Made by a program: the position numbers and the translations under genes. Positions 5,489-37,587 of a DNA stretch of 64,000 nucleotides are shown one piece after another. The notes beneath the pieces are model-generated. The model did not search any database, had not been told where the DNA came from, and was given only the letters and a program-made list of their open reading frames with translations. The stretch lies in sequence record LR756511.1. One strand, 5' to 3'. Position 1 is the stretch's first letter; the number at the start of each line of letters is the position of its first letter.

Positions 5489-5510
5489 GCAAAGAAATAG
5501 CCTTTCTAAT

Positions 5511-5783: not shown

Positions 5784-5796
5784 AATAACCTCCTTA

Positions 5797-6045: not shown

Positions 6046-6071
6046 ATATATTTCAAATAGAGGAGTAAGAT

Positions 6072-7884: not shown

Positions 7885-7915
7885 TTAAATTCAAATAGTT
7901 AGACTCTAATAATAT

Positions 7916-8182: not shown

Positions 8183-8183
8183 A

Positions 8184-9708: not shown

Positions 9709-9902
9709 TTGACATCAATTCTCTTTCTAATGTTTTCGATTAATTTGTCGATAGATTTATAAGTATCTGCCAATAATTGCCGTTCTTCATCCGTAGCAAG
9801 CAATGATGGAGTCAATTGCATTAATGCGGCATTGGCGCAACGTAATGCAGCAAGATGCGCAACATTAATGTAATCTTTCTCTTTCATTGAGCAAAAACAC
9901 AA
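9705..9902 (-). CDS. Hypothetical protein
   Basis: Coupled ORF. The true start may be slightly downstream (MKEKDY). Confidence 0.55.
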   Translation of the reverse strand: MCFCSMKEKDYINVAHLAALRCANAALMQLTPSLLATDEERQLLADTYKSIDKLIENIRKRIDVK

Positions 9903-9920
9903 ATCAATAGAAACAATATG

Positions 9921-10097
9921 TTAACCTTCATGACATCCCTCTACTTCTGCGTTCGGTACAGCCCACCAGGGAAACCGTGACCAATCTACTAAATTTCTAT
10001 AATGAGCTTGATAAAGAATTCTTAAATCTTTGTGGAACGTTCCATTTTGACAGGCTTCTAAGACTCGATCATGAACAGACTGAATTTCACTTGGCAT
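9921..10097 (-). CDS. Hypothetical 58-aa protein (not in ORF track)
   Basis: GGAGG RBS. Translated by hand: MPSEIQSVHDRVLEACQNGTFHKDLRILYQAHYRNLVDWSRFPWWAVPNAEVEGCHEG. Confidence 0.65.
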   Translation of the reverse strand: MPSEIQSVHDRVLEACQNGTFHKDLRILYQAHYRNLVDWSRFPWWAVPNAEVEGCHEG

Positions 10098-10121
10098 GAT
10101 TCCTCCTTCACGACTTCTTCA

Positions 10122-10403
10122 TTATGTATTCTGTTCTGGTATTTTTTCTACAGGAACATACAACTTGTTAGTTTTCCTACAATCATAATAACGGGAACAG
10201 TTATACATCATAAGTTCTTTACTCTCAGGCAGTTGCGGCTCGCACTTAATCTTTTCTGGCAGTACACTATAAAGATATTCGTAATCATCCAGCCAGCAAT
10301 TATCGTCGCCTTTTTGGTCACGGTGACGCCGAATTGCATTACGCAATTTCATTATTTCTTCTCGGCATTGTCCGAGAGACATATTTCTCAGGTCGTCATC
10401 CAA
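10122..10403 (-). CDS. Hypothetical protein
   Basis: 93-aa ORF in the string (HRDQKGDDNCWLDD motif). Confidence 0.65.
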   Translation of the reverse strand: MDDDLRNMSLGQCREEIMKLRNAIRRHRDQKGDDNCWLDDYEYLYSVLPEKIKCEPQLPESKELMMYNCSRYYDCRKTNKLYVPVEKIPEQNT

Positions 10404-10708
10404 TTTTTCACCTTGACTTTCATAGACTTCATGTTGCAGACTAAATACATTACATCAGCCGACATCATTGTATCTACATAAATTTCAAAGTGGAAAACAT
10501 TATACCATCCATAAAAGTAAAACTCTTGTGGTATGCCTTCCATGTTAAGCTTTACATTATACATTAATCCAGCAAGGTTGGGCGGTATAATTAGGGCAAT
10601 AACACATCCGCCCATCCTGTCACGTTCAGAATAGATAAAATCGTGTATATCTTTTGGTTGATTCTGCGAATCTGTTAAATCTAATTCACGGATCATAAGT
10701 ATTCCCAA
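10388..10708 (-). CDS. Hypothetical protein
   Basis: 106-aa ORF in the string. Start uncertain. Confidence 0.55.
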   Translation of the reverse strand: MGILMIRELDLTDSQNQPKDIHDFIYSERDRMGGCVIALIIPPNLAGLMYNVKLNMEGIPQEFYFYGWYNVFHFEIYVDTMMSADVMYLVCNMKSMKVKVKNWMTT

Positions 10709-11052
10709 GAACCACGTTTACGTGTCGTCTTCTTGAATGTTAGAATGAACGTTACTTCCTTCTGAAGAATCTCGGCAATAGACTGACTTGCTTCTCTCTG
10801 AATTCTATCTTTAAGAATGCGAGCCTGATTATGCCATTTCTTACCCGCATTAGGGCAAGAAAAACAATCGTGCAAATGCCCTTTGCTACTTCCAGCATGA
10901 ACCGACATTGCTTCGGCCCAGCCTGTCGGTCCCATAACGTTTCTTTTTACATTCATTTCCGTGTTGCATACACGGCAGAACATTTTCTCATACTCGCCTG
11001 GATCGGGACTAAAATAATCCCATCCAGCATGATAATTCTTTGTTTTTTTCAT
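10693..11052 (-). CDS. Putative zinc-binding protein
   Basis: CRVC ... HDCFSC motifs. Confidence 0.6.
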   Translation of the reverse strand: MKKTKNYHAGWDYFSPDPGEYEKMFCRVCNTEMNVKRNVMGPTGWAEAMSVHAGSSKGHLHDCFSCPNAGKKWHNQARILKDRIQREASQSIAEILQKEVTFILTFKKTTRKRGSWEYL

Positions 11053-11306
11053 TTTACACTTTCCGTAGTCGGATCAAATTTAAAACCAGCCAACAATAGC
11101 TCCAAGTCAGCCTTTAGTAAGGCAAAACCTGGAGGTAACGCATTAATGTAAGCGCGTAAAGCCTGTGGTGCGTAAGGATCGTGACAAAGATCGAGAACAA
11201 AGTATTGGCAGTTCTCACGTCCTGGCTTCCCATCAATTCGCTTTACTTCAAACTTATTATATAAGCCTCTAGTCGATTCTGGCATTACCAATACTCCTCT
11301 AACCAA
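11049..11306 (-). CDS. Hypothetical protein
   Basis: YFVLDLCHDPYAPQALRAY motif. The start is probably near 11285. Confidence 0.6.
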   Translation of the reverse strand: MVRGVLVMPESTRGLYNKFEVKRIDGKPGRENCQYFVLDLCHDPYAPQALRAYINALPPGFALLKADLELLLAGFKFDPTTESVK

Positions 11307-12178
11307 CTCGCCGTCTTCTCCAATGGATACTCTTCCCCGATTGACGCAATCGAGCTTATTTCCTCAAAATTGTCCATTGGCCCATTAATTACAGGTTCTA
11401 TGCGATGATAACGTTCACCCAGGAAGTTATTTCCCAAGTAATTAACCACAAGTGTATCACGCTCTGTAAAGATATTCAATATTGATTTAATCCAATTTAA
11501 ATATCCCCACTCCACATTCCTTTGCTCAATATAAACATCCCTGATTGTTCCCAACGATAAAACACATATATCGTCTAACTTTGGGTTTTCTCCCTGATTA
11601 CGCTTATCCTGTGTTTGCGCAATAGCACAGAACGCAGGATTATTCGCAACTAAGGCACCATCAATATACTTTCCATAACTAGGAAAAAATACAGGCACCG
11701 CTGATGTAGCCATTGCTACATCCACAACCTTCGCATCGCCATCCGAGTCCACGCCATCAAAGTTGTGGAAGATTTTTGCTCGCCAGCGTCGATGAATGCT
11801 TGCCTCATCATCGACGCAAAAAGAAGGCACCACTACCTTCTTAGCTAAATCTTTGAGTGTTAAATGCCCAAACACTCCACGCAGGAACGCTTTGAATTTT
11901 CTGTTGTCATACTTAGCGGTAAGTCCAGCATAGAAGGCCATCGTTCTTACTGGATTTGTAAAGAAAGCGAGCGGGAACCCCTTCAAGAAGTTCTCCCCAA
12001 TTTTATCCACGCAATGACCTGATGCAATTCCCAGGCCAATGATACCCCCGATAGAGGTTCCCGCTATTAAATCCGCTTTCTCAATTAAATGTGGACATCT
12101 CTTCATCAATCTGTCTAAGAGAACCACATCCGCAAAACCATGCATTCCGCCGCCGTCAATCGAAATGATTCTGTACAT
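11285..12178 (-). CDS. Patatin-like phospholipase
   Basis: IDGGG oxyanion loop, GTSIGG nucleophile elbow, SAVP and DGAL catalytic Asp. Confidence 0.9.
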   Translation of the reverse strand: MYRIISIDGGGMHGFADVVLLDRLMKRCPHLIEKADLIAGTSIGGIIGLGIASGHCVDKIGENFLKGFPLAFFTNPVRTMAFYAGLTAKYDNRKFKAFLRGVFGHLTLKDLAKKVVVPSFCVDDEASIHRRWRAKIFHNFDGVDSDGDAKVVDVAMATSAVPVFFPSYGKYIDGALVANNPAFCAIAQTQDKRNQGENPKLDDICVLSLGTIRDVYIEQRNVEWGYLNWIKSILNIFTERDTLVVNYLGNNFLGERYHRIEPVINGPMDNFEEISSIASIGEEYPLEKTASWLEEYW

Positions 12179-12510
12179 TATTCAGTCCATTCAATAATCG
12201 GACAGACCTTATCCTTTTTAGCCTTCAACCACTTACCAATCAATGTATTTGGATTATCAGGGTCTGCTTTTTTAAGCTGTCTTGCCATCCTCCACTCATC
12301 GCGTTTGTCAGCGATCCAACAAAGCAGGAAGAATGGGGATACCAGAATGGTTAAAAATAGGACCATTGGCAATCCAATGATTATTAGCACAAGCAAGTGC
12401 CAGAAGTAACTACAAAAATCCTTGTATGGCAATTCCCCGTCTACAAGTTGTGCATTAGGCGTGCAATATTTAATCAGCCTATAATGCCAACTATTTCGAC
12501 TTAGTTTCAT
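12178..12510 (-). CDS. Membrane protein
   Basis: Long hydrophobic stretch FWHLLVLIIIGLPMVLFLTILVSPFFLLCWI. Confidence 0.7.
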   Translation of the reverse strand: MKLSRNSWHYRLIKYCTPNAQLVDGELPYKDFCSYFWHLLVLIIIGLPMVLFLTILVSPFFLLCWIADKRDEWRMARQLKKADPDNPNTLIGKWLKAKKDKVCPIIEWTE

Positions 12511-13844: not shown

Positions 13845-14096
13845 CTAATACATACAGATAAGAGCAGATTCAATTGACTCTCCCTCATTATACAACTTTT
13901 CGTATTGGGTCTTCAAGGCTACATTGTTCCGAAATCGTTCGACATCTTCAAGTTTTGGGATGTAGTAATCATATTTTGCATCTGGATCGAAGCCGATGAT
14001 CGGGGCATTATAGCATCCCAAACTATACTTCTCGACTACCAAATCCCACCAACCCTGAAAATTGATTTCTTTGTTTGTTGATTCAAACTTCGACAT
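13845..14096 (-). CDS. Hypothetical protein
   Basis: 83-aa ORF with AGGAG RBS. Confidence 0.65.
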   Translation of the reverse strand: MSKFESTNKEINFQGWWDLVVEKYSLGCYNAPIIGFDPDAKYDYYIPKLEDVERFRNNVALKTQYEKLYNEGESIESALICMY

Positions 14097-14098
14097 TT

Positions 14099-14506
14099 TT
14101 ATTTCTCCTGAAGAACCTTATATTTGCATCCATCGTGCGATAATACTAATTTAATTGTTTTCGCATTGTCATCTATACCACATTGGATAACTTTTACGTC
14201 ATAAAGTTCAAATTCTTCAACAGAACTAGTTAAACGAGCATATCCAGGTTTTCGCTGGAGAACTTCTCCATCTATCGACCGAACCATGCAACTCGCTTTC
14301 TCTGCCTTGTAATACTCTACAATCTTGTTTTTCACCGCTTCAAAATCTTCTACAAACTCATCAAACGTGATGTTTTGCCAATTACAAAACCAAGGATGAT
14401 ATTCACCATCAAAGAAAATTTCGCAAATATCAAGATTTGGCCTTACCAAATTCGGAATTTCCAATTCCAGGGAATCATTTTTGCATGAATACAATTCTAG
14501 TTTCAT
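14099..14506 (-). CDS. Hypothetical protein
   Basis: AGGTGG RBS before ATG 14506. Confidence 0.65.
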   Translation of the reverse strand: MKLELYSCKNDSLELEIPNLVRPNLDICEIFFDGEYHPWFCNWQNITFDEFVEDFEAVKNKIVEYYKAEKASCMVRSIDGEVLQRKPGYARLTSSVEEFELYDVKVIQCGIDDNAKTIKLVLSHDGCKYKVLQEK

Positions 14507-14592
14507 ATCGCCACCTGTTCTAATGTTCACAAATAAAATAGTATTACAGTCAGTGGACTTACGGATAATTTAGAAAAAATGGGTCGATTCGC

Positions 14593-14620
14593 TTGAAAAG
14601 GCCAAATTCAATGCTATAAC
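14593..14620 (+). promoter_or_regulatory. Sigma70-type early promoter with extended -10
   Basis: TTGAAA-N16-TATAAC with TG at the extended -10 position. A 5' leader hairpin follows (14627-14663). Confidence 0.7.
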
Positions 14621-14693
14621 ACTTGTGAGTCAACGACGACTCGCCTTTTCCCCGTCGTGACTCTAAGTTTTACAATTCTTGGGAGGACTTGCA

Positions 14694-14915
14694 ATGTTGC
14701 TTCGCACCGTAAGCAAGGATGATTTCTTTGAGGCGCGTTTGGAAGACAAACCTGCGCCGAAAGAAAAGGAAGTTGTGCCGCTAGGGAATCTCATGTCAGC
14801 AATCGACACTGTATCAGAAGAGATTTCCGTCTGCGATAACGAAATCCAGAAGTGGCAATCAAGGAAAACGGTGATTCGGAACGCTTTCCAAAGAATCTTG
14901 AAAGCAATCCAATAG
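14694..14915 (+). CDS. Early coiled-coil protein, paralog of the N-terminal half of 3547-4029
   Basis: GGGAGG RBS. Shares GNLxSA...IxxCDxxIxxWxxRK with the 3547 protein. Confidence 0.7.
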   Translation: MLLRTVSKDDFFEARLEDKPAPKEKEVVPLGNLMSAIDTVSEEISVCDNEIQKWQSRKTVIRNAFQRILKAIQ

Positions 14916-14938
14916 AACAGGCAAGAGTAGCTGGTGTA

Positions 14939-15121
14939 CTAACGTACACGCAGTTTTTCACCTCTGCTCGCCTTTGTCGGCAAGTTAATCTTTTCGATCT
15001 TAATTGTCGGCTCACGCTTGCCGTCTTCAGCCTTCAATAAAGCATGAATTGTAAAAGCATAATCAGGGTGCTTTACCTTGATTGTTTTGCCAATTTTTAA
15101 TTCTTCAAGCAGGCTTTTCAT
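14939..15121 (-). CDS. Hypothetical protein
   Basis: 60-aa basic ORF. Confidence 0.55.
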   Translation of the reverse strand: MKSLLEELKIGKTIKVKHPDYAFTIHALLKAEDGKREPTIKIEKINLPTKASRGEKLRVR

Positions 15122-15142
15122 TGGTTCACCACTAAATAGGTT

Positions 15143-15475
15143 GTGAAATCATTCAAGGTTTGGATGGAAGAACTAGCTGGTCATATCGCAAATGATATCA
15201 TAGGAATATTGCGCAAAGCAAGCGATAAAATTGGACAATACGGAGGTGTAGATCGAAATGCCGCCGATGAAGCGGACTCACTGCTTCGCCAAGCTAGAGG
15301 CTACTACAACCTTGCCGCCAACGAAGGCGCGGATCGAAACATCGTATTTCAACTTGCTCGTCTTGCCAATGAATGCAAGGCTATACGCCATTTAGACCCT
15401 GAAAAGAACACTAAAATACAGCAAATTCAAGCTGATATTGAAGCAGTAATTAAGATTTTAAATCATCGTCTTTAG
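15143..15475 (+). CDS. Helical protein with capsid-targeting-like N-terminus
   Basis: Starts MKSFKVWMEE. CTAAATA lies 4 nt before the GTG. Confidence 0.65.
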   Translation: MKSFKVWMEELAGHIANDIIGILRKASDKIGQYGGVDRNAADEADSLLRQARGYYNLAANEGADRNIVFQLARLANECKAIRHLDPEKNTKIQQIQADIEAVIKILNHRL

Positions 15476-20721: not shown

Positions 20722-20892
20722 TTAAAAAGAATCAGGAGGATTTCCTGACATCCACCATGCCATGTTCGCTCCAACACAAAAGCAGAAAAAGCCAGCCATG
20801 TATTCATGATTGTTCGCAAAGCCATAAACAGCAAAGAAAGCCTGGACAGCAATCAGCGACCACATATAGTACGGATTTTTACGTGTAAACAT
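20722..20892 (-). CDS. 56-aa membrane protein (not in ORF track)
   Basis: MFTRKNPYYMWSLIAVQAFFAVYGFANNHEYMAGFFCFCVGANMAWWMSGNPPDSF, with two hydrophobic segments. Confidence 0.55.
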   Translation of the reverse strand: MFTRKNPYYMWSLIAVQAFFAVYGFANNHEYMAGFFCFCVGANMAWWMSGNPPDSF

Positions 20893-20904: not shown

Positions 20905-23900
20905 TTAATATCTTTCAATCTCGTATCTATTTGGATATTCGGTCTTGCCAGTAATTGCATTCTTGAATGCTTCCTTGTCAGGAATGCGTTCAATCCTTTG
21001 AAGCTGTTTGACGAATTCATCCCAATCAACATTAATAGACTTTCGCCATTCTTTATAACGTTTCTCCAGTCCGCTCAAATTCTTCTCTTTTGTGTACTCT
21101 TGCTCAACTCGCTCGAAAGGAGTGGTAAAGTAAATTTTGTTGTTTTTCAGACGTACCGTAAACTCTTCATTACTAAACGGCCTAATCTGGTTATATAACA
21201 GGTCCATAACCTTTGGCATTATAACTTCACCCAACGCATGTGAAATCGCATCAGATGTTTTCCAACCATGTTCTTTCGCAAGATTCATCATCTCTTCGTC
21301 CGCAAATGGGAATTGACGCTGTAAGTCCTCAAGACCTTGCTTTGCCAATCTTTCAAAATCATACTTTCCTTCACCAATGTTTTTGTGAAGAATATCAAGA
21401 ATTTGCTGTGCGTGAGTGTCCACTCCTGGCAGTCTTACAAACCTACGCTTATTCAATAAGTCTTCAGCGGATATAGTATGATATGTGTCTATTACCACAC
21501 TGTCATTATCCAGCATTTCCATTGACTGCATACCCCTCATATGACTAAGCATTTCAGGGCGATTTCCCTGAGCTAACTTCTTAATCAAACTGATTGGCTC
21601 AAGAAAATCTGGAAACTTATTCAAGACCATCTGTTGATGTTCTGGTAGCATATCTGTAAACTTCCATCCGTAGTCTCTACCACGTATATTAAAATGCTCA
21701 ACGTCATTGTGTATTATAAACTCAGCAGTTGCCAAGCTGTGTTTTGTCTTATCTGCCTTTTCGAACAATTCCATTACATCAGTCCCACCAACCCAATTGC
21801 CGCGAGCTAAATATTTGCCTTCCTTGCGAAGCTGGAATATCAAAACTGGCTTGTATTCATATAGCAATGTAAATTCCCTGTCATCTGAAGAGAGGGATCG
21901 CATTGTCGCGGCCTTATTGTCGTGTCCAAGAACAACGCCATTTACCCAAATGTGCCCATCGGAAGTTTTCATGTTAGTCGGCGGCATAAGGTCTGGACGT
22001 GCTTTAAACAGCTTTTCTCTTTGCTCTGGCGAGAATTCACCTATAGACCATGCGGCACCTCGCAAGCTAACCTCTTTAACAATGTCTGGTTTTTTAATCA
22101 TGAAGTCCAGAATATAATCATTCCATTTAGACGGGGATTCGTACTGTTGTAATGCGGTTTGTCTGATTTCGTCAGCATTAAACTTACCAGCATGGAAAGC
22201 TTTATTAGCCAAATCTTGTAGTGATGGACCGCCAGAATATACCCAAGCACCATTTTCGCCAATATTAAGTTTAACCTTTGTTTTTTGATCTGGTCCCAAT
22301 AGGTAGAATATATGCTCTCCACCCTCTGACGGGCCTGTTACCCATTTAACACCATCGGAATAATTCAAAACAATCGCATGATGCCCTAAGACATTATAAA
22401 GCTTTGAATGCTCTACATCCGCACCCCTCATAATGGCCTGCAAATCCTCGGCGTCAAGTTTATCCTTCAGCTGCATCGCTAGTCTAGGTACTTCGTCATT
22501 AGGGACATGGTTGAGAATCGACACTAGTAAATCGTGTGACAATTCTTTTCCGTATTTCGCTAACAGCCAGTGAGCTAACTTTTCGCTATTTGTATTCTCT
22601 AGAATATACTCATATCTGTATTCATCCATTTCAAAGTTTTGAGCCAAATACACGCCTATGTCGTCCAAATATCTCTGGTCTATGTTGCTTTCGTAATCGT
22701 GCAGCATAAATGCCTTAAGATATTCGAATGGAAGCTCCTCATCATTCTTCTGTAATATCTCCACACCCTTTTTCGCTATACGTAATTTAGCCTCAGTGCC
22801 AGGAGCTTTCTGGATCATTTCCTGTAACATCTCATTAGTCAGATAATCCTTATCTCCAACCTCTACAAGTTTTTCTAACATTCCTGGGTCTGCGGTCGGA
22901 ACGCCCCAATTATACATTTTTTCAAGTATTTGCTTTTGTTGTTCAGGAGTTAACTTTGTAAACGTTTCCACATTTATATTGGATAGCAAGTTCTCAGGAA
23001 TACGCCGATCATAGTCCATGCCAAGCTTCTTGAAGAACTCTTCTGGTTTGTTCTCTAGGAATATTCCAATTTCCGAACCCTTAAGCTTAATTTCGTGATT
23101 GTTTTTAAGCAATTCTTCAATCTTCCTTAGCGTTATTTCCTTATAACGCTTCATCATGCCCTTGTCTTGACTGATAGACTGATACTGTGCATCTGATAAT
23201 CCGACACCAAAACCGACATACTTGTTTTTTAAGTCTTCTGGCAACATCTGGAATTGAGCATCTGTAAGTGGCTTGTCCAAACGAACATAAACATCCAAGT
23301 AACGGCTCTTTTCGTTGTAATCTAATTTGGCGAAGGTTGCATCATCTACACCCTTCGAAAATCGCTTATAATCGGCTTTGTCTTCTGGAGAGAGCGGTTT
23401 TGGCGTTAAAACCTTTTGCAACCCATTTAGTTTTGGCTCAATACGAATTATATCATTCCAACTCATCTGTAGGTCGCCATCGTTTTGTGCGGAAGTTACA
23501 AGGTATTGCTTTTTCTCAGGATCATTTAAATCAGCATTCTTTAAAACTTGAACAACAAAGAAGTGGTACTTGTCTCGCCAATTACCTGAGAATGCCGTCT
23601 TTGTAACATTCCACAAACCAAACTCAGCCTTAGTCTTCTCTATGTCCTTCACAAAGTAGAAAGCTGGCTCATGTTCCTTGAAACGATAGGTATAGAACAT
23701 ATTGCTCGCATCAGATCGAGCAATACACCAACTATAAGGAACGTTACCCTTGTATTGAATGCAAGCTCGCGGACTGTCCGCATAGTATATTTCTAAACCG
23801 TTTTGGTTATAAATTGGCTTGCCATCGAACTTTACGTCGGTGAATTTAGCGCCAACAATATCTCTCTGACCCTTTACATAGTCTACGACAATCTCTAACT

Positions 23901-24135
23901 GGTGAAAGTCTGGATAAGCGTCTATGTTATTTCGTTGTTGGGAGGGAACAGTTGACCCTTGAACTGGAGCAAAAAGTTCTTTGAACTTCTTGTCACGCAT
24001 GTCTTTAAACCATGCGATGTAACGGTCAACAATTTCTGGCTGGATGCCTTGACTAATAAACTTTTGTCTTTGAGTCTTAAAGTCCTCGTTGATTGTGCGA
24101 GTTTCAGCGGAGCGAAACCATTCCCTAAATTCCAT
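20905..24135 (-). CDS. 1076-aa protein with capsid-targeting-like N-terminus (putative virion/ejected protein)
   Basis: Starts MEFREWFRSAE...INE. CTAAATA lies 4 nt before the ATG. Recurring FxxLxxExK-type helical motifs, no family recognised. Confidence 0.75.
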   Translation of the reverse strand: MEFREWFRSAETRTINEDFKTQRQKFISQGIQPEIVDRYIAWFKDMRDKKFKELFAPVQGSTVPSQQRNNIDAYPDFHQLEIVVDYVKGQRDIVGAKFTDVKFDGKPIYNQNGLEIYYADSPRACIQYKGNVPYSWCIARSDASNMFYTYRFKEHEPAFYFVKDIEKTKAEFGLWNVTKTAFSGNWRDKYHFFVVQVLKNADLNDPEKKQYLVTSAQNDGDLQMSWNDIIRIEPKLNGLQKVLTPKPLSPEDKADYKRFSKGVDDATFAKLDYNEKSRYLDVYVRLDKPLTDAQFQMLPEDLKNKYVGFGVGLSDAQYQSISQDKGMMKRYKEITLRKIEELLKNNHEIKLKGSEIGIFLENKPEEFFKKLGMDYDRRIPENLLSNINVETFTKLTPEQQKQILEKMYNWGVPTADPGMLEKLVEVGDKDYLTNEMLQEMIQKAPGTEAKLRIAKKGVEILQKNDEELPFEYLKAFMLHDYESNIDQRYLDDIGVYLAQNFEMDEYRYEYILENTNSEKLAHWLLAKYGKELSHDLLVSILNHVPNDEVPRLAMQLKDKLDAEDLQAIMRGADVEHSKLYNVLGHHAIVLNYSDGVKWVTGPSEGGEHIFYLLGPDQKTKVKLNIGENGAWVYSGGPSLQDLANKAFHAGKFNADEIRQTALQQYESPSKWNDYILDFMIKKPDIVKEVSLRGAAWSIGEFSPEQREKLFKARPDLMPPTNMKTSDGHIWVNGVVLGHDNKAATMRSLSSDDREFTLLYEYKPVLIFQLRKEGKYLARGNWVGGTDVMELFEKADKTKHSLATAEFIIHNDVEHFNIRGRDYGWKFTDMLPEHQQMVLNKFPDFLEPISLIKKLAQGNRPEMLSHMRGMQSMEMLDNDSVVIDTYHTISAEDLLNKRRFVRLPGVDTHAQQILDILHKNIGEGKYDFERLAKQGLEDLQRQFPFADEEMMNLAKEHGWKTSDAISHALGEVIMPKVMDLLYNQIRPFSNEEFTVRLKNNKIYFTTPFERVEQEYTKEKNLSGLEKRYKEWRKSINVDWDEFVKQLQRIERIPDKEAFKNAITGKTEYPNRYEIERY

Positions 24136-24189
24136 ATCTTATTTAGAAGAATTGTACAACAAAAATGCCCCACAAAGGGGCACATTTAT

Positions 24190-24414
24190 CTAATCTGCAA
24201 ATCGAGCTTTATTTAATACTTGTTCAAGCTGTTGTTTGGTGTCAAAATAGCCTGTCCAAACTTCGTGGTCGGAATTGTACATGCTTTCACGCCATTGCCC
24301 ATCAGTATGCAAATACTGACCGTCTGGACCTGAATCCGCTCGTTGATCTAGACTGCATCCGCTCTCCCACAAATCAACGGTATAATGGTCCCATTCTTCC
24401 TTCGAATGGACCAT
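24190..24414 (-). CDS. Hypothetical protein
   Basis: 74-aa ORF overlapped in another frame by a 37-aa ORF at 24374-24487 that has the better RBS. Confidence 0.45.
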   Translation of the reverse strand: MVHSKEEWDHYTVDLWESGCSLDQRADSGPDGQYLHTDGQWRESMYNSDHEVWTGYFDTKQQLEQVLNKARFAD

Positions 24415-24503
24415 TCCAGATAACTTGTTCTACTTTAGGCTTAGTGTACTTTGTGTGCCCCAGCCAGTAATTTTTGACAAAACCCATGTTCCTAATATAG
24501 TAA

Positions 24504-25964
24504 TTAGTGATGGTGTCGCATCAAAATAGGCGAATATAAATCTATTTGTGCTGGACCTTGACGGATAACCATATCATACAGTACTTCAAACGTTCCTCCA
24601 GAATCAACATTATCGTCAATAATCAAGACCCTTTTACCCTTGTAATCGCCCTCTGATCCAAATGGATTAATGTATCTTCTGCTCTCTTTATCCTGAATGT
24701 TCTTGATTTGAAGGGGCTTGTTTTGTGGTTCTCTTCTAAGTAAATAGTTAAGGTACTGTTTCTTACCCTCGAAACCTTGTGGATTTTGCTCATAACGTCG
24801 GCGTAAGTTTTCTACATCTACATTGATTTGAGATGCAGGCACTTTCTTAAATTCTCTTACCTCTTCTGCCCGCAGAATTCCTGCGGCTTTATTGGCAAAA
24901 ATCTTATTGAAAGATTTACTACTTTCTGGATAAGCAATAATGTCGTATTTATATCCGCCTGACATATCTATAAAATGCCTCAAAGCTATATCCATAAACT
25001 GATCTTGTATCTTCCTGCCATACGCGCCTTGCGGGTCTTTAAGTATTTTAACCAATGCTGTACTTAACCAATAGAAATACTTCTCTCCAAGCTCTTTCGA
25101 GTTAATCTTATTCATGGAGTAGCCAATTTTGCCATGCATTTTACCAAGCCTGCCTTCCAATACTTTGTAGCGAGAGTTGAGCTTTCTAATTAAAACTGTC
25201 GCTTGCTGCGCCGCAATTTTTGGATCAGGCGACAAATTATAAGGCTTATGTGTTTCTGGATCGGCGTATACGCTATTTGTAAAGCCGCCCTTATTTTGCG
25301 GTTGGGTTGGCGTGGTTTGAGGTGGAGCAGTGGTGGGATAAGCCAATTCCGAAGCAATTGGCCTCATCATAAAGTTATCTAATTTGCCTGCTGTTAGTTC
25401 ACTTATAAACAACTCTAATTCTTGCATTGTTCGCCATTCAGGGGAACTATATATTCTAGCGTCAATCGAGCCTGATTCTGGATCGGTGCCACTCCATTGA
25501 ACACCCGTTCTTGGCTGGTTGGCAGTTCCAGCAGCATAGTCGCCTTTAGGCAACATGCCTCTAGGCGTCCATTTTGGTGTTTCCCCTGGCTTTAACGGCG
25601 CGTTCCAGGGTTCAGGTGTTGGTTGGATAACATGACTGTCGCCAAAAGCAAAAATGCTTGGGAAGGCAAATCCGTAATATATCTTAGCCGTTTTAAACGA
25701 TTCAAGAGCGTGCTTTTCTGGCTCCCTGTAAAACAAATCTGGCTGCGTATACTTTACTTTCCTTGCATAGTTGATCGGTGCCAACCTAATCAAATCGCTT
25801 GGCTTGTCATTGGGAGAATATCGCAATTTGCCCTGAGTCAGAAACAGAGATATTAAGCCTTTTTTGTCATTGTCTTTTAACGCTGTTGCAATTTCCTCAT
25901 GCGGAATCTTCGACGTATCAATTGTAAAGCCTTCGTTTATAAAGTACCATTCCTTAAAATCCAC
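24504..25964 (-). CDS. Type I phosphoribosyltransferase-domain protein with long N-terminal region
   Basis: PRPP-binding loop RVLIIDDNVDSGGT. True start is GTG 25964 (AGGAGG RBS, TAGTG coupling to NADAR), giving MDFKEWYFINE. Confidence 0.8.
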   Translation of the reverse strand: MDFKEWYFINEGFTIDTSKIPHEEIATALKDNDKKGLISLFLTQGKLRYSPNDKPSDLIRLAPINYARKVKYTQPDLFYREPEKHALESFKTAKIYYGFAFPSIFAFGDSHVIQPTPEPWNAPLKPGETPKWTPRGMLPKGDYAAGTANQPRTGVQWSGTDPESGSIDARIYSSPEWRTMQELELFISELTAGKLDNFMMRPIASELAYPTTAPPQTTPTQPQNKGGFTNSVYADPETHKPYNLSPDPKIAAQQATVLIRKLNSRYKVLEGRLGKMHGKIGYSMNKINSKELGEKYFYWLSTALVKILKDPQGAYGRKIQDQFMDIALRHFIDMSGGYKYDIIAYPESSKSFNKIFANKAAGILRAEEVREFKKVPASQINVDVENLRRRYEQNPQGFEGKKQYLNYLLRREPQNKPLQIKNIQDKESRRYINPFGSEGDYKGKRVLIIDDNVDSGGTFEVLYDMVIRQGPAQIDLYSPILMRHHH

Positions 25965-26461
25965 TATACCTCCTGCCTTAATTTCATCCAAAGCCTGCCA
26001 AGCACATTCTGACCTACCCACTTCCCGTTCTGTAAAGCAGCACCCCAAAATACACCAGACCCTTGCGGTCGTTTTGTAACATCCTCTATGATTTCGGACT
26101 TTCCTGTATTCTTTAGCTCTTGCTTTAGTTCAGGATGTTGGTCCAGCTTTAACCTTAAGACAAGCTCCATATTAGCAACGTCTTCCTGGCTCATTGGCTG
26201 AACGGTACGCTTGTGCGCAAAACTCTTCGACAACATTTTTGCAGCCATAGGAGAAGTCTGCGCACGGATGGTATTTTGAATAGACGTTTCTGAGTATCTT
26301 AGTGCCTGAAACAACGATTCAGCGGTCGGCCAAACCTTGTTCTCGTATGTGATAGGATAACGGGACATATTGCCCATCCATCCGTACGGTAGATTAACTT
26401 TAGTAAAAGCGATGACCTGTGGCATTTGTCTAGCCTCCAAAAACTCGGTCCAAGTGAGCAT
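25964..26461 (-). CDS. NADAR (YbiA-like) N-glycosidase
   Basis: GWMGNM, WPTAESLFQA, KLDQHPEL, IIED, FWG and GQNVLGRLWMKLR. Starts MLTWTEFLEAR. Confidence 0.9.
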   Translation of the reverse strand: MLTWTEFLEARQMPQVIAFTKVNLPYGWMGNMSRYPITYENKVWPTAESLFQALRYSETSIQNTIRAQTSPMAAKMLSKSFAHKRTVQPMSQEDVANMELVLRLKLDQHPELKQELKNTGKSEIIEDVTKRPQGSGVFWGAALQNGKWVGQNVLGRLWMKLRQEV

Positions 26462-26516
26462 GAAGTATTTACGCCTCTACTTTACTATACTACAAAATTT
26501 CTCAAAGTAAAATCGC

Positions 26517-27454: not shown

Positions 27455-27484
27455 AAAACGCCAGTCATTTCTGACTGGCGTTTT
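27455..27484 (-). terminator. Terminator of the head operon
   Basis: AAAACGCCAGTCA/TGACTGGCGTTTT stem with a minus-strand U-tract just after the MCP stop. Confidence 0.85.
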
Positions 27485-27505: not shown

Positions 27506-28981
27506 TTAGATAACGAAGTTGTGGATTGTCATTCTGGCATAGAATTTTGCGCCTTCGCGTAATAACTTCTTGCCGTACCTTGTTAGTATGCCTTTACGTG
27601 GGCAGAAGCTTTCAGGGTCTAATATAACTGGTGTCTGTGTTAGAGGCACGTACGGGCAGTAAAAGTAACCTGAATCCATATAAGAATCACCCTTATAACC
27701 CATTAAAATCTGATTGGTTCTAAAGAGTGGGTCTTTATATAGGCGCCATCTGTTATTGATGGTTCCAACATACTGAATACCCAACGAGCTAGTGAAAGTT
27801 TCACTTGGGGCTGGTGCGAAACCTGCTGTTGCGGTTTCGAAAATGGATGCAACTTCTGGAGAAGTTACAAGCCAGTTTGCACCACCACGTAGAGTCTTAC
27901 GATGAATAACAGCCGACATTTCGACTATCTTCACATATAGGGACTCATACTTTTCCTTGATGGTATCGCCTAGCGCGGTACCGAAATCCCAAGCTCCTAC
28001 GGTACCAGCATTTAGGAGAAGGTCCGTGAGGACTTCACGATCAATTTCTAGGTTAATTTCCTGCGCGAGAACTGCTGTTAGTTCAGCTTCTGCGTCCAAG
28101 TTATGCTGGGAACGCAAGTCCTGCTGTGCTTCATAAGACCATACAGCCTTTAGCTTACGAGTCTTAGCTGCGATTTCTTCGGACTCAACAACCAAGTTAA
28201 CTTCTGGTAAGTCCTGGTTGCATTCCATGTTATATTCATATGATACAACCAAGTTATTAGCGCCTGGAGCTACGTTCCAAGTTGCTACTAATTCGCCTGT
28301 TACTAGGTTCAAAGTAGCTGCTGTGATGAACGATGCTGGTGCGCCAATTGGCGTGAAGCTAAATACACCTGCACTGGAGACAGTAAATGTCTGGACGGCT
28401 GTTGCACCGACGAAGACATTACCAGTCATAGTTCCAGCTAGGATTGGCGTATGCTCTAGTGGAGCATATGCGGAGACTACTACGGCACCTGGATCAACGT
28501 TCGAAGATTCGTTCTGGACGAACTGCGAGCTATAGAAGATATCCAAGTTTGCCGTGCCGTCTGCCAACTGCTGTATCGAATTAATATCGTCGCCTGGGAA
28601 ACCGCCATTATTATCAGCACCACGGCGAGCGCCCTTGTTGCTGGAATAACGGAATCTCAAATAGTACACCAAGCCTGTTGGACCCAACAAAGGCTGTACG
28701 GAAACTATCTTATTAGCGATAAGCTGAGGATAGATTCTACGAATTAACGGTATCGAAATACGCTTGAACTGTGCGATGTCGCCAGTGTCAGTTGCGATTT
28801 CGTTGAAAAGTCTCTGGTTCTCAAGAAGAACGGCGGTACAAGCCTTGCCGTATGTATCTTCTACGAAAGTTTCCTTGCCACGACGGAATTCGGTGGAGCC
28901 GATACCTTCTAGCAAACCAGTCTGTGCCCAAGTTTCTTCAACTTTGCGGGCTTCGTTCAAAAACTTTGCGTTTGCACTCAT
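27506..28981 (-). CDS. gp23: Major capsid protein, T4 gp23-like
   Basis: LLENQ, LIRRIYPQLIANKIVSVQPLLGPTG, AKTRKLKAVWSYEAQQDLRSQHNLDAEAEL, EINLEIDRE and FYCPYVPL. Confidence 0.97.
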   Translation of the reverse strand: MSANAKFLNEARKVEETWAQTGLLEGIGSTEFRRGKETFVEDTYGKACTAVLLENQRLFNEIATDTGDIAQFKRISIPLIRRIYPQLIANKIVSVQPLLGPTGLVYYLRFRYSSNKGARRGADNNGGFPGDDINSIQQLADGTANLDIFYSSQFVQNESSNVDPGAVVVSAYAPLEHTPILAGTMTGNVFVGATAVQTFTVSSAGVFSFTPIGAPASFITAATLNLVTGELVATWNVAPGANNLVVSYEYNMECNQDLPEVNLVVESEEIAAKTRKLKAVWSYEAQQDLRSQHNLDAEAELTAVLAQEINLEIDREVLTDLLLNAGTVGAWDFGTALGDTIKEKYESLYVKIVEMSAVIHRKTLRGGANWLVTSPEVASIFETATAGFAPAPSETFTSSLGIQYVGTINNRWRLYKDPLFRTNQILMGYKGDSYMDSGYFYCPYVPLTQTPVILDPESFCPRKGILTRYGKKLLREGAKFYARMTIHNFVI

Positions 28982-29952: not shown

Positions 29953-30621
29953 CTACCTCGCTAAGTACTTGTTAGTTGATTCCTTAATTAAACCACTGAG
30001 AGCGGCTATTACCACTTCTTTGTTATTGGTATATACGCGACTACTTGTATTTTTCTCAAAACTATTGTAATTATTTTGAGGAATATAACTTTCACGCTTA
30101 CCACTCACTATTCTCTCTTGGAACGCAGCAGGCGTCGATGGATCAGCAACAGCATCAAACGTTATTAGTCTGTAACCTTCACCAATAACTAATATGCCGT
30201 TCTCATTCGTCTTACCATTGCCTACACCACGACTACTCATTCCAACTCTGATGCCGCCCTGTAATAACGCATTCAACTGGCGACCCATTGCTGTTCCTAA
30301 AATCTCTCCTTCACCCATAAGAATATGACCTTCCCACCATAGCTTAGTAATGATGTGAGAAGCATCTTTAAAGTGAATGATACTATCCTGTGGATGGTCT
30401 AATTCACCAAGCAATCCACGGGCTTTAACAACTTCCTGCAAGCGCTGGACATTCTCATCCAACACCGCGTATGGATACATTCTCTTATTTTTGTTAACAA
30501 TCTCTGCTTCCTGAAGCTTACCACGGAATTTGAGAAGACCCTTTTCAAGATTAGATTCTTTAAGGTCTATCTCAAATCCGAAGCAATCAAATTCATTCAG
30601 CAGCATTACGCCTTCTCTCAT
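29953..30621 (-). CDS. gp21: Prohead maturation protease, T4 gp21-like
   Basis: NKNKRMYP, LGELDHP, GMSSRGVG and ITFDAVADPS. Confidence 0.95.
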   Translation of the reverse strand: MREGVMLLNEFDCFGFEIDLKESNLEKGLLKFRGKLQEAEIVNKNKRMYPYAVLDENVQRLQEVVKARGLLGELDHPQDSIIHFKDASHIITKLWWEGHILMGEGEILGTAMGRQLNALLQGGIRVGMSSRGVGNGKTNENGILVIGEGYRLITFDAVADPSTPAAFQERIVSGKRESYIPQNNYNSFEKNTSSRVYTNNKEVVIAALSGLIKESTNKYLAR

Positions 30622-32597: not shown

Positions 32598-32945
32598 ATG
32601 ACTCAAAAAGTGGCGGACAAAATGAAAAGATTTTTGGACTATTACCGATTTAGAGAAGACGAGAACCAGGACCATGAACCAGAGAAGGGCTTAGGCGATA
32701 TAAACGCCATGCCTAATGACGATGAAATTCTTATTAAATTGGCAAAAATGGCGGTAAGTCGTCACCAAGAACGCATGATAGAGTTCTTCAGTGCGCTTAG
32801 CCGACATGATGATGATATTAAACGACTTCTAGACAAGTACAAGGATAACCGCAGAGGCTATCCTATTAACGACACCCGCCCTAAAGGAAGTGATGATAAA
32901 GATGTGATTGCGCCAAACCAAGCTGATATGAGCGATCCAATTTAG
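32598..32945 (+). CDS. Hypothetical protein with capsid-targeting-like motif
   Basis: MKRFLDYYRFRE near the N-terminus, TATATA upstream. Confidence 0.6.
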   Translation: MTQKVADKMKRFLDYYRFREDENQDHEPEKGLGDINAMPNDDEILIKLAKMAVSRHQERMIEFFSALSRHDDDIKRLLDKYKDNRRGYPINDTRPKGSDDKDVIAPNQADMSDPI

Positions 32946-34781: not shown

Positions 34782-35014
34782 TATTTATTTACTTTAGACA
34801 AAAAGATTGGGTCTTTCTCGCTTTCTTCATTAATCGCCAGAACAGCGTCAACAGAACAGTGTGGACATAGCGCAGTGTCATTGTCTCTATCCGTCCACTC
34901 TTTAATCTCTGAGACATTAAAAATCCGTAAGCAATGGTAACAGGCGCACTCTGTTACCATTTTCAAACGATCTTTATTATGTATGGCAAGCATTGGTGCC
35001 ATTCGAATTTCCAT
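34772..35014 (-). CDS. Small zinc-binding protein
   Basis: CACYHC ... ALCPHCSVDAV. Confidence 0.7.
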   Translation of the reverse strand: MEIRMAPMLAIHNKDRLKMVTECACYHCLRIFNVSEIKEWTDRDNDTALCPHCSVDAVLAINEESEKDPIFLSKVNKYWF

Positions 35015-37587
35015 TAATCCCCCAAACTAGAATGGTCTATATCTTCAACATCCTGTTCACTTTCGTAGTCCTGAATTTCCATATCATATTTGATAATGTC
35101 TGCTTCCGTTGCCTTTGGAACTGGCTTCGCCTGTCCCGCTGGTGGTAACATATCAGGCGCCGCTTGCTGAGGCGGTGGAGGCATTGGTGGTGGACCCCCT
35201 GGCCCTCCCACTGGCGCTGGTCCCATCGGCGGACCCCCTGGCGGTGGCCCACCTGGAGCCGCCCCTGGAGGCATTCCCTCTGGACCGAGATTTGGATTTG
35301 GTCCCCCTGGTTGCCCACCAATCTCCTGCTCGCCCTGTCCTGGCAAACCAATACCTAATATCGTTGGGTTCTGAGCAATGATTTGTAACTTCAAATCCTC
35401 TAGCTTTTGAACCTTCACCCTCGCCATCATTTCCTTGGCTTCATCCTCATTATACTTCATCCACTTTGTCAAAATGTCAAAGTCAGACAGTAATTGAGAA
35501 CCCTTCAAACTATTCGCGTTATTAATTCTATTTGTTACAATTTCCGCACGACTTAACTCACGCCAATCGCTCGGCGGCGTCATCTTTATGCTCAAATCTT
35601 CATAAGCTTCAGGAGGGAATCCTCTAAGCTTCAAATGCTTGTCGGCCACCTGATACAAAGCTTCCTCTAAATGAGCCTGTAAACGCTCAATCATACGAGC
35701 AAACTTAACGTCCTGAGCAGACAAAGTAATTCTTGTCGCATTTGGGTCTTCCAAGGAAAAGTAGTTCTTTGGGAAATTCAAAGCTGTATATAACTTGTTT
35801 CTAAAATATACAGCATCATCAATTTCGCCCAAATTCTGTGCGCCTGGAAGTGTATCAATCCTCGTATTTGACTGCGGACGAATTGGTATCCAAATATCCT
35901 CGTCCTGTGCTGGCGCGTGCCAACGTTCTTCCACCACAGATGGTCCGCCCTGAGCAAACTGATTCCTTGGAACCTTCTTCTTTCGGAATTGTTCCTTAAT
36001 ACGATCCATGAACGCTTCCGCCTTATATGGCGGCAATTGTCCCACATCAACGTAAAAACAACGGCGCTCAGGTGCGCGCGTGAGTCGGTAAATAACCATT
36101 GCGTCTTCCATCATACGCAACTGATGGGCTGGACCACGGGCAGCTTCAATTAAGCTAACACCATATGGATAGAAAGTCTTTCTGTAATCTCCAATCTTTA
36201 GGTGAATAACCTGCTCTGGTGAGAAACGAATTGCCGTAGATTGCTGCAATTCCGCTTCCGTTGCCGATGAAATTGGAGCTTTTACAATCGACTGATAATC
36301 AGGCGCATCCTTCGATTGCTGATACTCTAGAACCTTACCTTTTACCGTTTCAATACGAAACATCGTTTCTGGCGGAAGGTCATTAATCTTGTATACACCT
36401 TCCTTTGGATTATCAGGATTAATGATGATTTCCCAAAACTCATCGCCCTTAATGAAAAGTCGCTTCGCTTTGTCCCACATCGTTCTCTGATCGAGATTCA
36501 ACATATCACGATGGAAGAACAAGAAATTTAACTCATCCTGAATTTCCTTATCCGCACAATGAATCTTAAATACCTTACCTTCCTCATCCTTCTGACAATT
36601 ATGCATAACACAAGATGTTGTGCAGAAGTTCTTATGTTTCTCTACCGATAGGTCATAAACAGCCATTTTCTTATGAGGAAGAACACCAATAATACGTCTA
36701 CGATCTGGCTTCTTGGCAAGATACTTTAATTCTTGATAAGAGAAACCGTGTTTCTTCAACCAAAGAGAGATATTCAGCCATGTCATACCAATCTGGCGAG
36801 AGATTTGTTTAGTGGTCAAACCATTCCCAATTAGGCGGGCAACATGATTCACTCGTTCATATTGCTCCTGTCTTTCACCCAAACGCCACTCGTCAAGGAA
36901 TTGACGTTCGTGCAACCAACCTTGATTAAATGTGAAGATTCGTGGGAATTGATTCGTTTTAATCTTTGTTTGATGCTGATTGGCGTTTACACGGTAGAAT
37001 GGCATCAACTCGTCGCCAAACTTCAAATCTCCCGCAAAACACCATTCTCCATCACGCTTTAAAATGCGATGGTCTGGAGTAATTGTCTCCACTACCCCGT
37101 TATCAAGAACGATTTGCACGGTTTCATCGAATTTAACGAAACGTGGAGAATATGCCCAACCAATCGTATAATCCTCTGTTTCAAAGTCATAACAATAAAC
37201 AGGGAACTTCTCTCCCGCTTTATTGTTCGCTAACCATTCAATTGTTTTTGGGCCATGATAAACGGTAGAAATAAGGGTGTCGCCTGCCACGCAAGCTTCA
37301 TCCGCAAAAACCGTCATCGCCATCTCAATTTCAGGAATACTCAGAACTAGTCTGTCATACTCCTTATATCGGTTTGTTCTGTTTGTCGAGCTAGTCGTAT
37401 CGACCAGTTCGTTTTGGACTCTAATGAAAGCTCCACCTTGAGACATTGACTCAAGGTTTCGCAAGTCCATGATTGAGTCGGGACTTGTAACGCCCGCACT
37501 CGGAAAATCACGCACGTCCGACTTTTTACTCAAAGGGTCTTGCGTGAAAGCATACGTAAAAATCTTAAATAAATCGTACCAAGCCAT
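35014..37587 (-). CDS. gp20: Portal protein, T4 gp20-like, intein-containing, with Pro/Gly-rich C-tail
   Basis: LRMMEDAMVIYRLTRAPERRCFYVDVGQLP, EDIWIP, IDTLPGAQNLGEIDD and YFRNKLYTALNFP. Confidence 0.95.
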   Translation of the reverse strand: MAWYDLFKIFTYAFTQDPLSKKSDVRDFPSAGVTSPDSIMDLRNLESMSQGGAFIRVQNELVDTTSSTNRTNRYKEYDRLVLSIPEIEMAMTVFADEACVAGDTLISTVYHGPKTIEWLANNKAGEKFPVYCYDFETEDYTIGWAYSPRFVKFDETVQIVLDNGVVETITPDHRILKRDGEWCFAGDLKFGDELMPFYRVNANQHQTKIKTNQFPRIFTFNQGWLHERQFLDEWRLGERQEQYERVNHVARLIGNGLTTKQISRQIGMTWLNISLWLKKHGFSYQELKYLAKKPDRRRIIGVLPHKKMAVYDLSVEKHKNFCTTSCVMHNCQKDEEGKVFKIHCADKEIQDELNFLFFHRDMLNLDQRTMWDKAKRLFIKGDEFWEIIINPDNPKEGVYKINDLPPETMFRIETVKGKVLEYQQSKDAPDYQSIVKAPISSATEAELQQSTAIRFSPEQVIHLKIGDYRKTFYPYGVSLIEAARGPAHQLRMMEDAMVIYRLTRAPERRCFYVDVGQLPPYKAEAFMDRIKEQFRKKKVPRNQFAQGGPSVVEERWHAPAQDEDIWIPIRPQSNTRIDTLPGAQNLGEIDDAVYFRNKLYTALNFPKNYFSLEDPNATRITLSAQDVKFARMIERLQAHLEEALYQVADKHLKLRGFPPEAYEDLSIKMTPPSDWRELSRAEIVTNRINNANSLKGSQLLSDFDILTKWMKYNEDEAKEMMARVKVQKLEDLKLQIIAQNPTILGIGLPGQGEQEIGGQPGGPNPNLGPEGMPPGAAPGGPPPGGPPMGPAPVGGPGGPPPMPPPPQQAAPDMLPPAGQAKPVPKATEADIIKYDMEIQDYESEQDVEDIDHSSLGD
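36598..37293 (-). mobile_element. Intein (232 aa) in the portal gene, no intact homing endonuclease
   Basis: Block A CVAGDTLI, block B TPDHRIL, block F VYDLSVEKHKNF, terminal HN followed by +1 Cys. Confidence 0.92.

Follow-up and report, generated by a model that had tools for sequence, protein, structure and literature searches.

T4-like leader peptides point to a phosphoribosyltransferase-like protein, a 1076-residue protein and probably a NADAR enzyme as candidate head cargo of an uncultured 595-kb phage

What do a NADAR enzyme, a phosphoribosyltransferase (PRTase)-like protein and a protein of 1076 amino acids (aa) have in common in the genome of a very large phage? Their three open reading frames (ORFs), all on the minus strand, lie at positions 20905 to 26461 of a 64,000-nucleotide stretch of DNA, here called the window, which corresponds to bases 496001-560000 of LR756511.1, an unannotated 595,163-bp assembly of an uncultured phage. 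A sequence-only reading of the window had proposed that the three proteins share capsid-targeting-like N-termini and form a single injected counterdefense system, an interpretation that as a whole is partly supported. The account we consider probable, though well short of certain, is that the proteins are T4-style head cargo carried by leader peptides, that NADAR and the PRTase-like protein form a pair and the 1076-aa gene a separate unit, and that the leader is a genome-wide tag. The elements in question are the following.

20905-24135, minus strand: gene for the 1076-aa protein, with a leader, a conserved N-terminal domain (residues 18-350) and a helical-repeat and beta-rich C-terminal part
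24085-24135, minus strand: leader of the 1076-aa protein, 17 codons, with an I-N-E end before a conserved mature start
24504-25964, minus strand: PRTase-like gene, 486 aa, with a leader, an N-terminal domain, a Pro/Thr linker and a type I PRTase-like domain (Pfam Pribosyltran, 2.9e-7)
25932-25964, minus strand: leader of the PRTase-like protein, 11 codons, with an I-N-E end before an invariant Gly
25964-26461, minus strand: NADAR gene, Glu-type (YbiA-like) N-glycosidase/ADP-ribosylglycohydrolase family, 165 aa from the first Met, M1 (Pfam)
26435-26461, minus strand: candidate capsid-targeting leader of NADAR, MLTWTEFLE, first 9 codons

The T4 internal head proteins IPII and IPIII, whose N-termini were read from NC_000866, start with MKTYQEFIAE, and typical leaders of the present phage are MKTFNQWLES, MKTFSEWLEA and MLTFTEWLET. 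Head loading in T4 needs no more than the first 10 residues; within this capsid-targeting sequence (CTS), residues 4 and 7 serve targeting and residues 8 and 10 processing, and gp21 cleaves after L/I-x-E (PMC9026906). Residue by residue, the leaders studied here share the register of the IPII/IPIII CTS. They comprise 9 to 17 residues, in which two aromatic residues three apart are followed by an aliphatic residue and then a Glu, and they end in hydrophobic-x-Glu. The 1076-aa leader has F3, W6 and I15-N-E17, the PRTase-like leader has F3, W6, I9 and E11, and NADAR read from M1 begins with MLTWTEFLEA, placing W4, F7, L8 and E9 in the same register as in IPII and IPIII. The idea that all three N-termini resemble capsid-targeting peptides therefore stands for the PRTase-like and 1076-aa proteins, and is only probable for NADAR, whose start codon is ambiguous. 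Because the CTS-like register, the gp21-type cut motif and an S77 protease occur together in this phage, head loading is the best reading of the leaders, and packaging itself is what we infer from it. The leaders would be expected to be removed by the gp21-family Peptidase_S77 protease encoded 4 kb away. Comparison with T4 supports the proposed capsid-address reading well.

The resemblance to the T4 proteins IPI-III and Alt extends beyond the peptide. Both cases show a short propeptide in which aromatic residues occupy positions 4 and 7, position 8 is aliphatic and Glu stands at 9-11, with a hydrophobic-x-Glu cut motif; in both, an S77 protease of the gp21 family accompanies a Gp23 capsid and a T4-type portal, and the cargo genes are diverse and vary between relatives. 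The two differ in scale, with a handful of tagged proteins in T4 versus at least 26, possibly ~55, here. Unlike T4 CTS cargo, the present set prefers Trp at the second aromatic position, includes large enzymes, resides in a 595-kb genome and is known from sequence alone. In phiKZ and SPN3US, many head-internal proteins are likewise cut after Glu by a gp21-related protease, but the sites are of the A/S/G-x-E type and the propeptides are mostly longer than 100 residues, in contrast to the short T4-like leaders found here. Head packaging of phage NADARs has already been proposed from genomics by Iyer, Aravind and co-workers, who suggested that myovirus NADAR, Macro, Nudix and ADP-ribosyltransferase (ART) proteins are packed in the head and delivered early (PMC9503650). 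Their proposal was built on gene neighborhood and on MuF/portal fusions, whereas here a separable address peptide is carried by stand-alone proteins. A literature search found no paper naming LR756511 or describing CTS-like leaders in phages of this size. The new elements are a T4-like leader that can be separated from its cargo, the extent of its use in a megaphage and two families of cargo.

How far does the signal extend across the genome? A five-column motif model, trained on leaders from other phages only, was used to scan the whole genome as 13 separate, unjoined pieces. The scan gave 50 core matches in 184k residues, 17 of them at residues 3-6 of the longest ORF versus 1.2 expected, an N-terminal placement with a binomial P of 1.9e-15, and 26 core matches sit 2-5 residues behind a start codon (~1 expected). 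A looser leader pattern has 58 N-terminal matches versus 16.8 expected. Of the 26 leaders, 14 have their first aromatic residue at position 4 and 9 have it at position 3, and 23 have Trp as the second. Synonymous codons of the leaders vary freely, indicating that the constraint acts at the level of the peptide. The resemblance among the three proteins is therefore not a chance one; it is far beyond chance. Tagged proteins encoded elsewhere in the genome include a C39-like peptidase, a helix-turn-helix protein, a DUF5661 protein, a PolyA_pol/CCA-type nucleotidyltransferase, a HAD_SAK_1 protein and a 2H phosphoesterase, the last three being of RNA-repair type; most of the others have no domain match. 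No ADP-ribosyltransferase was found among the tagged proteins of the LR756511.1 genome, and only two sub-threshold ART-PolyVal matches were seen, in the 43-kb metagenome contig L019.

Other leader-bearing ORFs were observed as well. Within the window, the ORFs at 6604-6846 (plus strand) and 15143-15475 (plus strand) score 13.0 and 10.2 bits on the motif model, and those at 5625-5783 (minus strand), 3168-3410 (minus strand) and 32622-32945 (plus strand) fit the loose pattern only; such small leader-bearing window ORFs had no Pfam match where tested. Three more large proteins of the LR756511.1 genome carry a leader, at L014:27122-29968, L014:29983-32064 and L015:28124-31243 (949, 694 and 1040 aa); the two L014 genes are adjacent, and none of the three proteins has an informative domain match. 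On L021, a 166-kb contig of 33% G+C, positions 4287-12340 encode a 1076-aa homologue, a GNAT acetyltransferase and a 146-aa protein, each with a leader of the aliphatic type described below.

Two unrelated families, that of the PRTase-like protein and that of the 1076-aa protein, carry interchangeable leaders. In the PRTase-like family the leaders are of two types, one with two aromatics three apart as in the window and one aliphatic ('MKL..I'), and both end in a Glu directly before a nearly invariant Gly. A word-based homologue search for this family returned 2 and then 4 proteins, and an exhaustive search yielded 84 cluster representatives; a second subset of the family, used as the query, had no match in viral contigs. 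In an alignment of 40 members, the Glu and Gly of the junction are kept in at least 90%. The 1076-aa family comprises 222 homologues with ~50% identity over the first 350 aa, and its members have the same two leader types, all of which abut one conserved mature start. AlphaFold models the 1076-aa protein with a predicted local distance difference test (pLDDT) score of 84 and leaves residues 1-16 disordered. The fold has no meaningful match in the PDB or BFVD, only generic helical repeats, and a PDB profile search was negative. The protein is predicted to be an internal head protein.

What kind of protein is the PRTase-like partner? The parts of the gene and its ribosome-binding site are as follows.

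25969-25974, minus strand: AGGAGG ribosome-binding site inside the 3' end of the NADAR gene, serving the PRTase GTG
25350-25931, minus strand: family-specific N-terminal domain, residues 12 to ~205, conserved across the family
25287-25349, minus strand: Pro/Thr-rich linker, a variable, gapped stretch of the family alignment
24507-25112, minus strand: type I PRTase-like domain, residues ~285-486, recognized by PDB profile matches to the loop that binds phosphoribosyl pyrophosphate (PRPP)

Several details of the sequence-only reading were borne out at this gene. The NADAR stop and PRTase-like start share the sequence TAGTG at 25962-25966, four bases downstream of an AGGAGG, as expected for translational coupling; the corrected start at GTG 25964 agrees with every relative, all of which begin at the equivalent residue, and the longer TTG ORF is unsupported; and the unassigned N-terminal domain of about 200 aa and the Pro/Thr linker are both present. 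This domain has no Pfam, PHROG or PDB match. Structure prediction, which had been suggested for the N-terminal domain and for the 1076-aa protein, succeeded for the latter alone, the domain not being confidently modeled. The Pfam Pribosyltran match covers residues 428-478 only (30.3 bits versus 26.3). The PRPP-binding loop VLIIDDNVDSGGT at 24591-24629 is of the canonical 13-residue type with a hydrophobic run, an acidic pair and a Ser/Thr-Gly-x-Thr end; at least 90% of family members retain both acidic residues and the last Thr. With the low-confidence model of the protein as the Foldseek query, all of the top 50 hits were type I PRTases, aligned over ~160 columns with TM scores of 0.44-0.54. 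The named PRTase families (HGPRT, APRT, OPRT, Prs, ComF and PurF) do not accommodate the protein, the best being HGPRTase at 20 bits versus a cutoff of 150, and all such matches are confined to the PRPP loop. The best PADLOC match is ShosT (2.1e-5, 22.5 bits, residues 282-472), a PRPP-binding toxin that contains a PRTase domain and disturbs purine metabolism (PMC11961720). The two have in common a type I PRTase-like domain with a PRPP loop, over which the match, extending across ~190 residues, is weak; the phage protein differs in having no pyrophosphatase domain and no DprA-like partner nearby, which sets it outside ShosT. As a separate observation, a 152-aa protein of the same genome (L006:47209-47664, plus strand) resembles the PRTase-like start in its first 14 residues, that is, the leader and a Glu-Gly-Phe junction; the protein, for which Pfam gives no match, is possibly a paralogue of the N-terminal domain in truncated form.

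The NADAR protein belongs to its superfamily by a wide score (Pfam NADAR 2.3e-19, 70.7 bits versus a cutoff of 35.1) and aligns with Escherichia coli YbiA (2b3w, 2.6e-14). The sequence-only reading had remarked that its catalytic motifs depart from the usual pattern. Set against the catalytic residues defined by Schuller et al. (PMC11543638), E48, E126 and W139 are kept and R55 replaces the phosphate-binding Lys. E126 lies in the last strand, where Glu is the YbiA-type signature (PMC11125620), and R55 is common to the orthologues of contigs L019 and L005, the closest relatives. In E. coli C7 NADAR, a Lys-to-Arg change kept in vitro activity and abolished rescue from DarT1 (PMC11543638). Judging from these residues and the PRPP loop, neither NADAR nor the PRTase-like protein looks obviously dead.

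To which kind of NADAR is it closest? The protein falls outside the DarT1-associated (BC4488) class, being Glu- and not Asp-type and having no ART gene in the block, and its N-terminal extension is a leader, not a folded extension as in DarT1-associated NADARs. It also falls outside the phage gp30.3/AdfN class, with Glu and not His at that last-strand position, and no T-even phage is among the 41 phage records that it matched by tblastn. T4 AdfN (gp30.3) is, like it, a stand-alone phage NADAR of similar size; AdfN is not reported as packaged, and the window NADAR differs from it in its CTS-like extension and in being coupled to a PRTase-like partner. NADARs of all tested subfamilies strip ADP-ribose from guanine in vitro, and AdfN defeats DarTG1 (PMC11543638, PMC11125620, PMC11257639). 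The top NCBIfam match is the DS-32 NADAR model (2.4e-29, 101.7 bits, below the equivalog cutoff of 240). DS-32 is a validated E. coli defense pair, consisting of the PRTase DS-32A and the NADAR DS-32B, of unknown mechanism (10.1101/2025.01.08.631726). The phage genes encode the same domain pair, but they are phage-borne and have NADAR in first place, and the PRTase protein carries a leader as well as an additional N-terminal domain; the score of the window NADAR lies far below equivalog level, and no DS-32 model is among the NCBIfam matches of the phage PRTase-like family.

Does NADAR carry the leader at all? The answer depends on its start codon, for which the following elements matter, together with the corresponding motif of the 1076-aa gene.

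26423-26425, minus strand: alternative NADAR start M13, with GGAGG 8 nt upstream
26466-26471, minus strand: TAAATA motif 4 nt upstream of NADAR M1, a promoter-like or initiation element
24140-24145, minus strand: TAAATA motif 4 nt upstream of the 1076-aa start codon

The Shine-Dalgarno spacing is 8 nt for M13 (GGAGG) versus 12 nt for M1. The 12 extra codons from M1 fit the leader pattern, for which the chance is ~1.5% given the internal frequency of the loose pattern, and the leader is nearly identical to another one of the same genome, MLTFTEWLE. From background rates, the joint chance of the leader fit and of TAAATA before M1 is roughly 1 in 1000. The leader is absent from all NADAR homologues examined, namely 58 bacterial ones and those of L019 and L005. 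The start is therefore ambiguous; the codons and the motif favor M1, perhaps used alongside M13, and a product started at M13 would be a leaderless form that is probably unpackaged.

The motif itself calls for a word about transcription. The block had been described as bearing late-promoter motifs, of which the T4 type was not recovered. The T4 late consensus TATAAATA is not enriched (5 found versus 4.2 expected) and none precedes the block, and a scan for sigma-70-type promoters gave no more sites than in shuffles. What is present is TAAATA, 4 nt before both the NADAR M1 and the 1076-aa starts. Genome-wide, TA[AT]ATA ending 2-14 nt before the start is found in 15/26 tagged genes versus 56/1009 others (p 3e-12). 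Since the capsid, portal and protease genes lack it, the motif cannot be called late. Genes bearing it usually have no Shine-Dalgarno site, and its proximity to the start codon may lead to transcripts with almost no 5' untranslated region.

Are the three genes one system or two? On the minus strand, the order is portal, glycosyltransferase, a 616-aa protein, Peptidase_S77 protease, scaffold-like protein, Gp23 capsid protein, a terminator, a 212-aa ORF of no known function, NADAR, PRTase-like, a second terminator, the 1076-aa gene, a third terminator and a Dam-type methylase, and a gap of 368 bp lies between the PRTase-like gene and the 1076-aa ORF. The boundaries and the two head genes that bear on packaging are as follows.

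29953-30621, minus strand: prohead protease, T4 gp21 family (Pfam Peptidase_S77, 2.5e-27)
27506-28981, minus strand: major capsid protein, T4 Gp23 family (Pfam Gp23, 2.5e-86)
27455-27484, no strand assigned: strong bidirectional terminator with a 13-bp stem after the capsid gene (hairpin scan)
24165-24183, minus strand: intrinsic-terminator-like hairpin and T-run at the end of the NADAR-PRTase unit (hairpin scan)
20731-20749, minus strand: terminator-like hairpin after the 1076-aa gene

The head module is of T4 type (Gp23 capsid, Peptidase_S77, T4 portal and T4 TerL by Pfam) and lies upstream of the three genes, in agreement with the sequence-only placement of the block downstream of the capsid operon. 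Residues 7-10 of the capsid protein, F-L-N-E, have the form of the leader's processing half. The terminator at 27455-27484 is the boundary between the head operon and a variable cargo stretch that runs from the capsid gene to the Dam methylase gene and holds two separate units, the coupled NADAR-PRTase-like pair with its terminator and the 1076-aa gene. A single linked system of three genes is not supported, because a terminator separates the pair from the 1076-aa gene and because the latter occurs without the other two in close relatives. In L001, with a capsid protein 97% identical, the capsid gene is followed by two small ORFs, the 1076-aa homologue and Dam; in L002, with a capsid protein 91% identical, the 1076-aa gene lies near the capsid gene with other genes in the gap. 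NADAR and PRTase are missing from both, contrary to the expectation that the three genes would be linked in related phages.

The pair behaves as a variable cassette that recurs in a distant phage contig. On L019, seven consecutive leader-bearing genes are followed by a PRTase-family gene and then by a convergent NADAR gene, whose product, 50% identical, is the closest relative of the window NADAR. The nearest PRTase relative (L003) and the one in a 527-kb phage (L004 = L020) have no NADAR neighbor. Three further observations concern these neighborhoods. In L002, a TnsA-like endonuclease gene (2706-3572) directly follows the capsid gene, at the site of the 212-aa ORF and the NADAR-PRTase pair. 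The leader-bearing array of L019 (2434-9762) includes the two genes with sub-threshold ART-PolyVal matches, and a PcfJ-like protein is encoded nearby at 13912-15447. At L005 2708-5702, the other close NADAR homologue carries a fusion to ~190 residues with no known function; its neighbors are a kinase-plus-2H-phosphoesterase gene on one side and a NUDIX gene on the other, a context of RNA repair or ADP-ribose.

How might such proteins act? The leader would dock the PRTase-like, 1076-aa and probably the NADAR proteins on the scaffolding core of the prohead, the prohead protease would trim it, and the mature enzymes would stay with the DNA inside the head and accompany it into the next cell. NADAR and the PRTase would then probably act early in infection on N-glycosidic bonds of ribose-phosphate or ADP-ribose, either as writer and eraser or in two successive steps. 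This suggestion for the function of the pair is the weaker part of the account and draws on analogy with DS-32, which has the same domain pair.

Several results weigh against this account. As to packaging, the PRTase-like and 1076-aa families occur in no other of 50,697 GenBank phage records and have no cultured member, so that no virion proteome covers them; the TA[AT]ATA motif of the tagged genes is not shared by the capsid, portal and protease genes; the M13-equivalent residue is the start of 58/58 bacterial and both phage NADAR homologues; and the L019 NADAR has no leader and is encoded on the strand opposite to the PRTase-family gene. As to the pair, NADAR and PRTase are linked in only 2/4 phage contexts and in 0/75 bacterial loci with close NADARs, when a PRTase-family gene was sought within 4 kb and the positive controls scored. 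As to the PRTase itself, the model, built from a two-sequence alignment, is of low confidence (mean pLDDT 49, 60-84 in the PRTase domain), and the family has no specific similarity to any named PRTase. No DS-32 PRTase model is among the 11 NCBIfam matches of the window protein or among the 25 families, out of 49 matched in all, that most of the 40 members hit.

The alternative that survives best concerns the pair. In it, the PRTase-like protein is an injected, toxin-like effector of host takeover, comparable to ShosT and DS-32A, and NADAR is its eraser or antidote, limiting damage to the producer cell or resetting the modification. The ShosT match, the best in PADLOC, spans the whole PRTase domain, and ShosT acts through PRPP binding and purine metabolism (PMC11961720); the DS-32 pairing of PRTase and NADAR has been read as toxin-antitoxin partner swapping (10.1101/2025.01.08.631726). 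NADAR comes first in gene order and is translationally coupled, and NADAR/YbiA proteins act on 5-phosphoribosyl compounds, the class to which PRTase products belong, by cleaving their N-glycosidic bonds. Yet half of the phage contexts of the PRTase family are without NADAR, an antidote is of little use to a lytic phage late in infection, a NADAR started at M1 would also bear a leader and be codelivered, and the ShosT match is weak and leaves out the pyrophosphatase domain. We regard this version as unlikely, though it deserves serious attention.

The one-system interpretation, in which all three proteins are injected to reverse DarT1-type DNA ADP-ribosylation, recycle ADP-ribose/PRPP or rebuild NAD at the moment of DNA entry, now seems improbable. 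It has in its favor the in vitro removal of ADP-ribose from guanine by NADARs, the defeat of DarTG1 by AdfN, the presence of the NADAR catalytic residues and the leaders on all three proteins. But the 1076-aa gene is a transcription unit of its own that does without the other two in close relatives; the NADAR is Glu-type, differing from both the Asp-type partners of DarT1 and the His-type AdfN, with no T-even phage in its tblastn matches; and the very Lys-to-Arg replacement that it carries abolished DarT1 rescue in the C7 enzyme. NAD reconstitution of the Adps-like kind was rejected as a candidate, the similarity to ribose-phosphate pyrophosphokinase being limited to the PRPP loop and no Namat-like or nicotinamide transferase partner being seen.

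Similarly improbable is a simpler possibility for NADAR, that it starts at M13 and is an ordinary cytoplasmic enzyme of bacterial origin, the tag-like codons being a chance matter and the adjacency to the PRTase a product of regional variability. The better-spaced GGAGG, the common start of the homologues and the existence of 75 bacterial loci with NADARs 40-56% identical speak for it. It would have to explain why the 12 extra codons match the leader and almost equal another leader of the genome, why M1, like the starts of other tagged genes, is preceded by TAAATA at 4 nt (background 5.5%) and why the orthologous NADAR in L019 again adjoins a PRTase-family gene. The remaining alternative, that the shared peptide is no capsid address and serves leaderless-transcript initiation, phage chaperone binding or targeting elsewhere in the cell, can draw on the 15/26 tagged genes whose TA[AT]ATA is so near the start that the 5' leader may be almost nil and on the lack of this motif in the capsid, portal and protease genes, but we consider it very unlikely, given freely varying synonymous codons, a PRTase gene that keeps the peptide despite translation from an internal AGGAGG site, agreement in register and residue classes with the CTS defined by experiment in T4, a protease-type motif that in two unrelated families immediately precedes the conserved start of the mature protein, and an AlphaFold model that leaves residues 1-16 of the 1076-aa protein unstructured.

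What follows if the leader is a capsid address? Sequence by itself would then reveal which proteins very large uncultured phages bring with them into the cell, information otherwise obtained only through virion proteomics of cultured phages. The T4 mechanism would be extended to genomes more than 3 times larger with a cargo list 10 times longer, and the PRTase-like and 1076-aa families, which have no cultured representative, would be singled out as delivered proteins. The occurrence of a PRTase-NADAR pair in phages and in bacterial defense suggests shared chemistry and makes the pair a target for structural and comparative work. A bolder proposal, which we put forward tentatively as possible without calling it likely, is that in T4-headed megaphages some 25-55 different proteins are labeled by one address peptide derived from that of T4, among them NADAR, the PRTase-like family, RNA-repair enzymes, a C39-like peptidase and a DNA-binding protein, and that the PRTase-like family is a new class of injected effector with DS-32-type PRTase-NADAR chemistry, working on the opposite side of the conflict. 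If this is true, the injected effector set of an uncultured phage could be read directly from its sequence.

Two other genes of the window drew attention. The T4-type portal gene (35014-37587, minus strand, 857 aa) contains an intein-splicing-like insert at residues ~151-330, which scores 33.8 bits versus the Pfam threshold of 35.8. At 52780-53799 on the minus strand, a 339-aa ORF begins with residues that, by eye, resemble the phosphate-binding start of actin/Hsp70-type ATPases.

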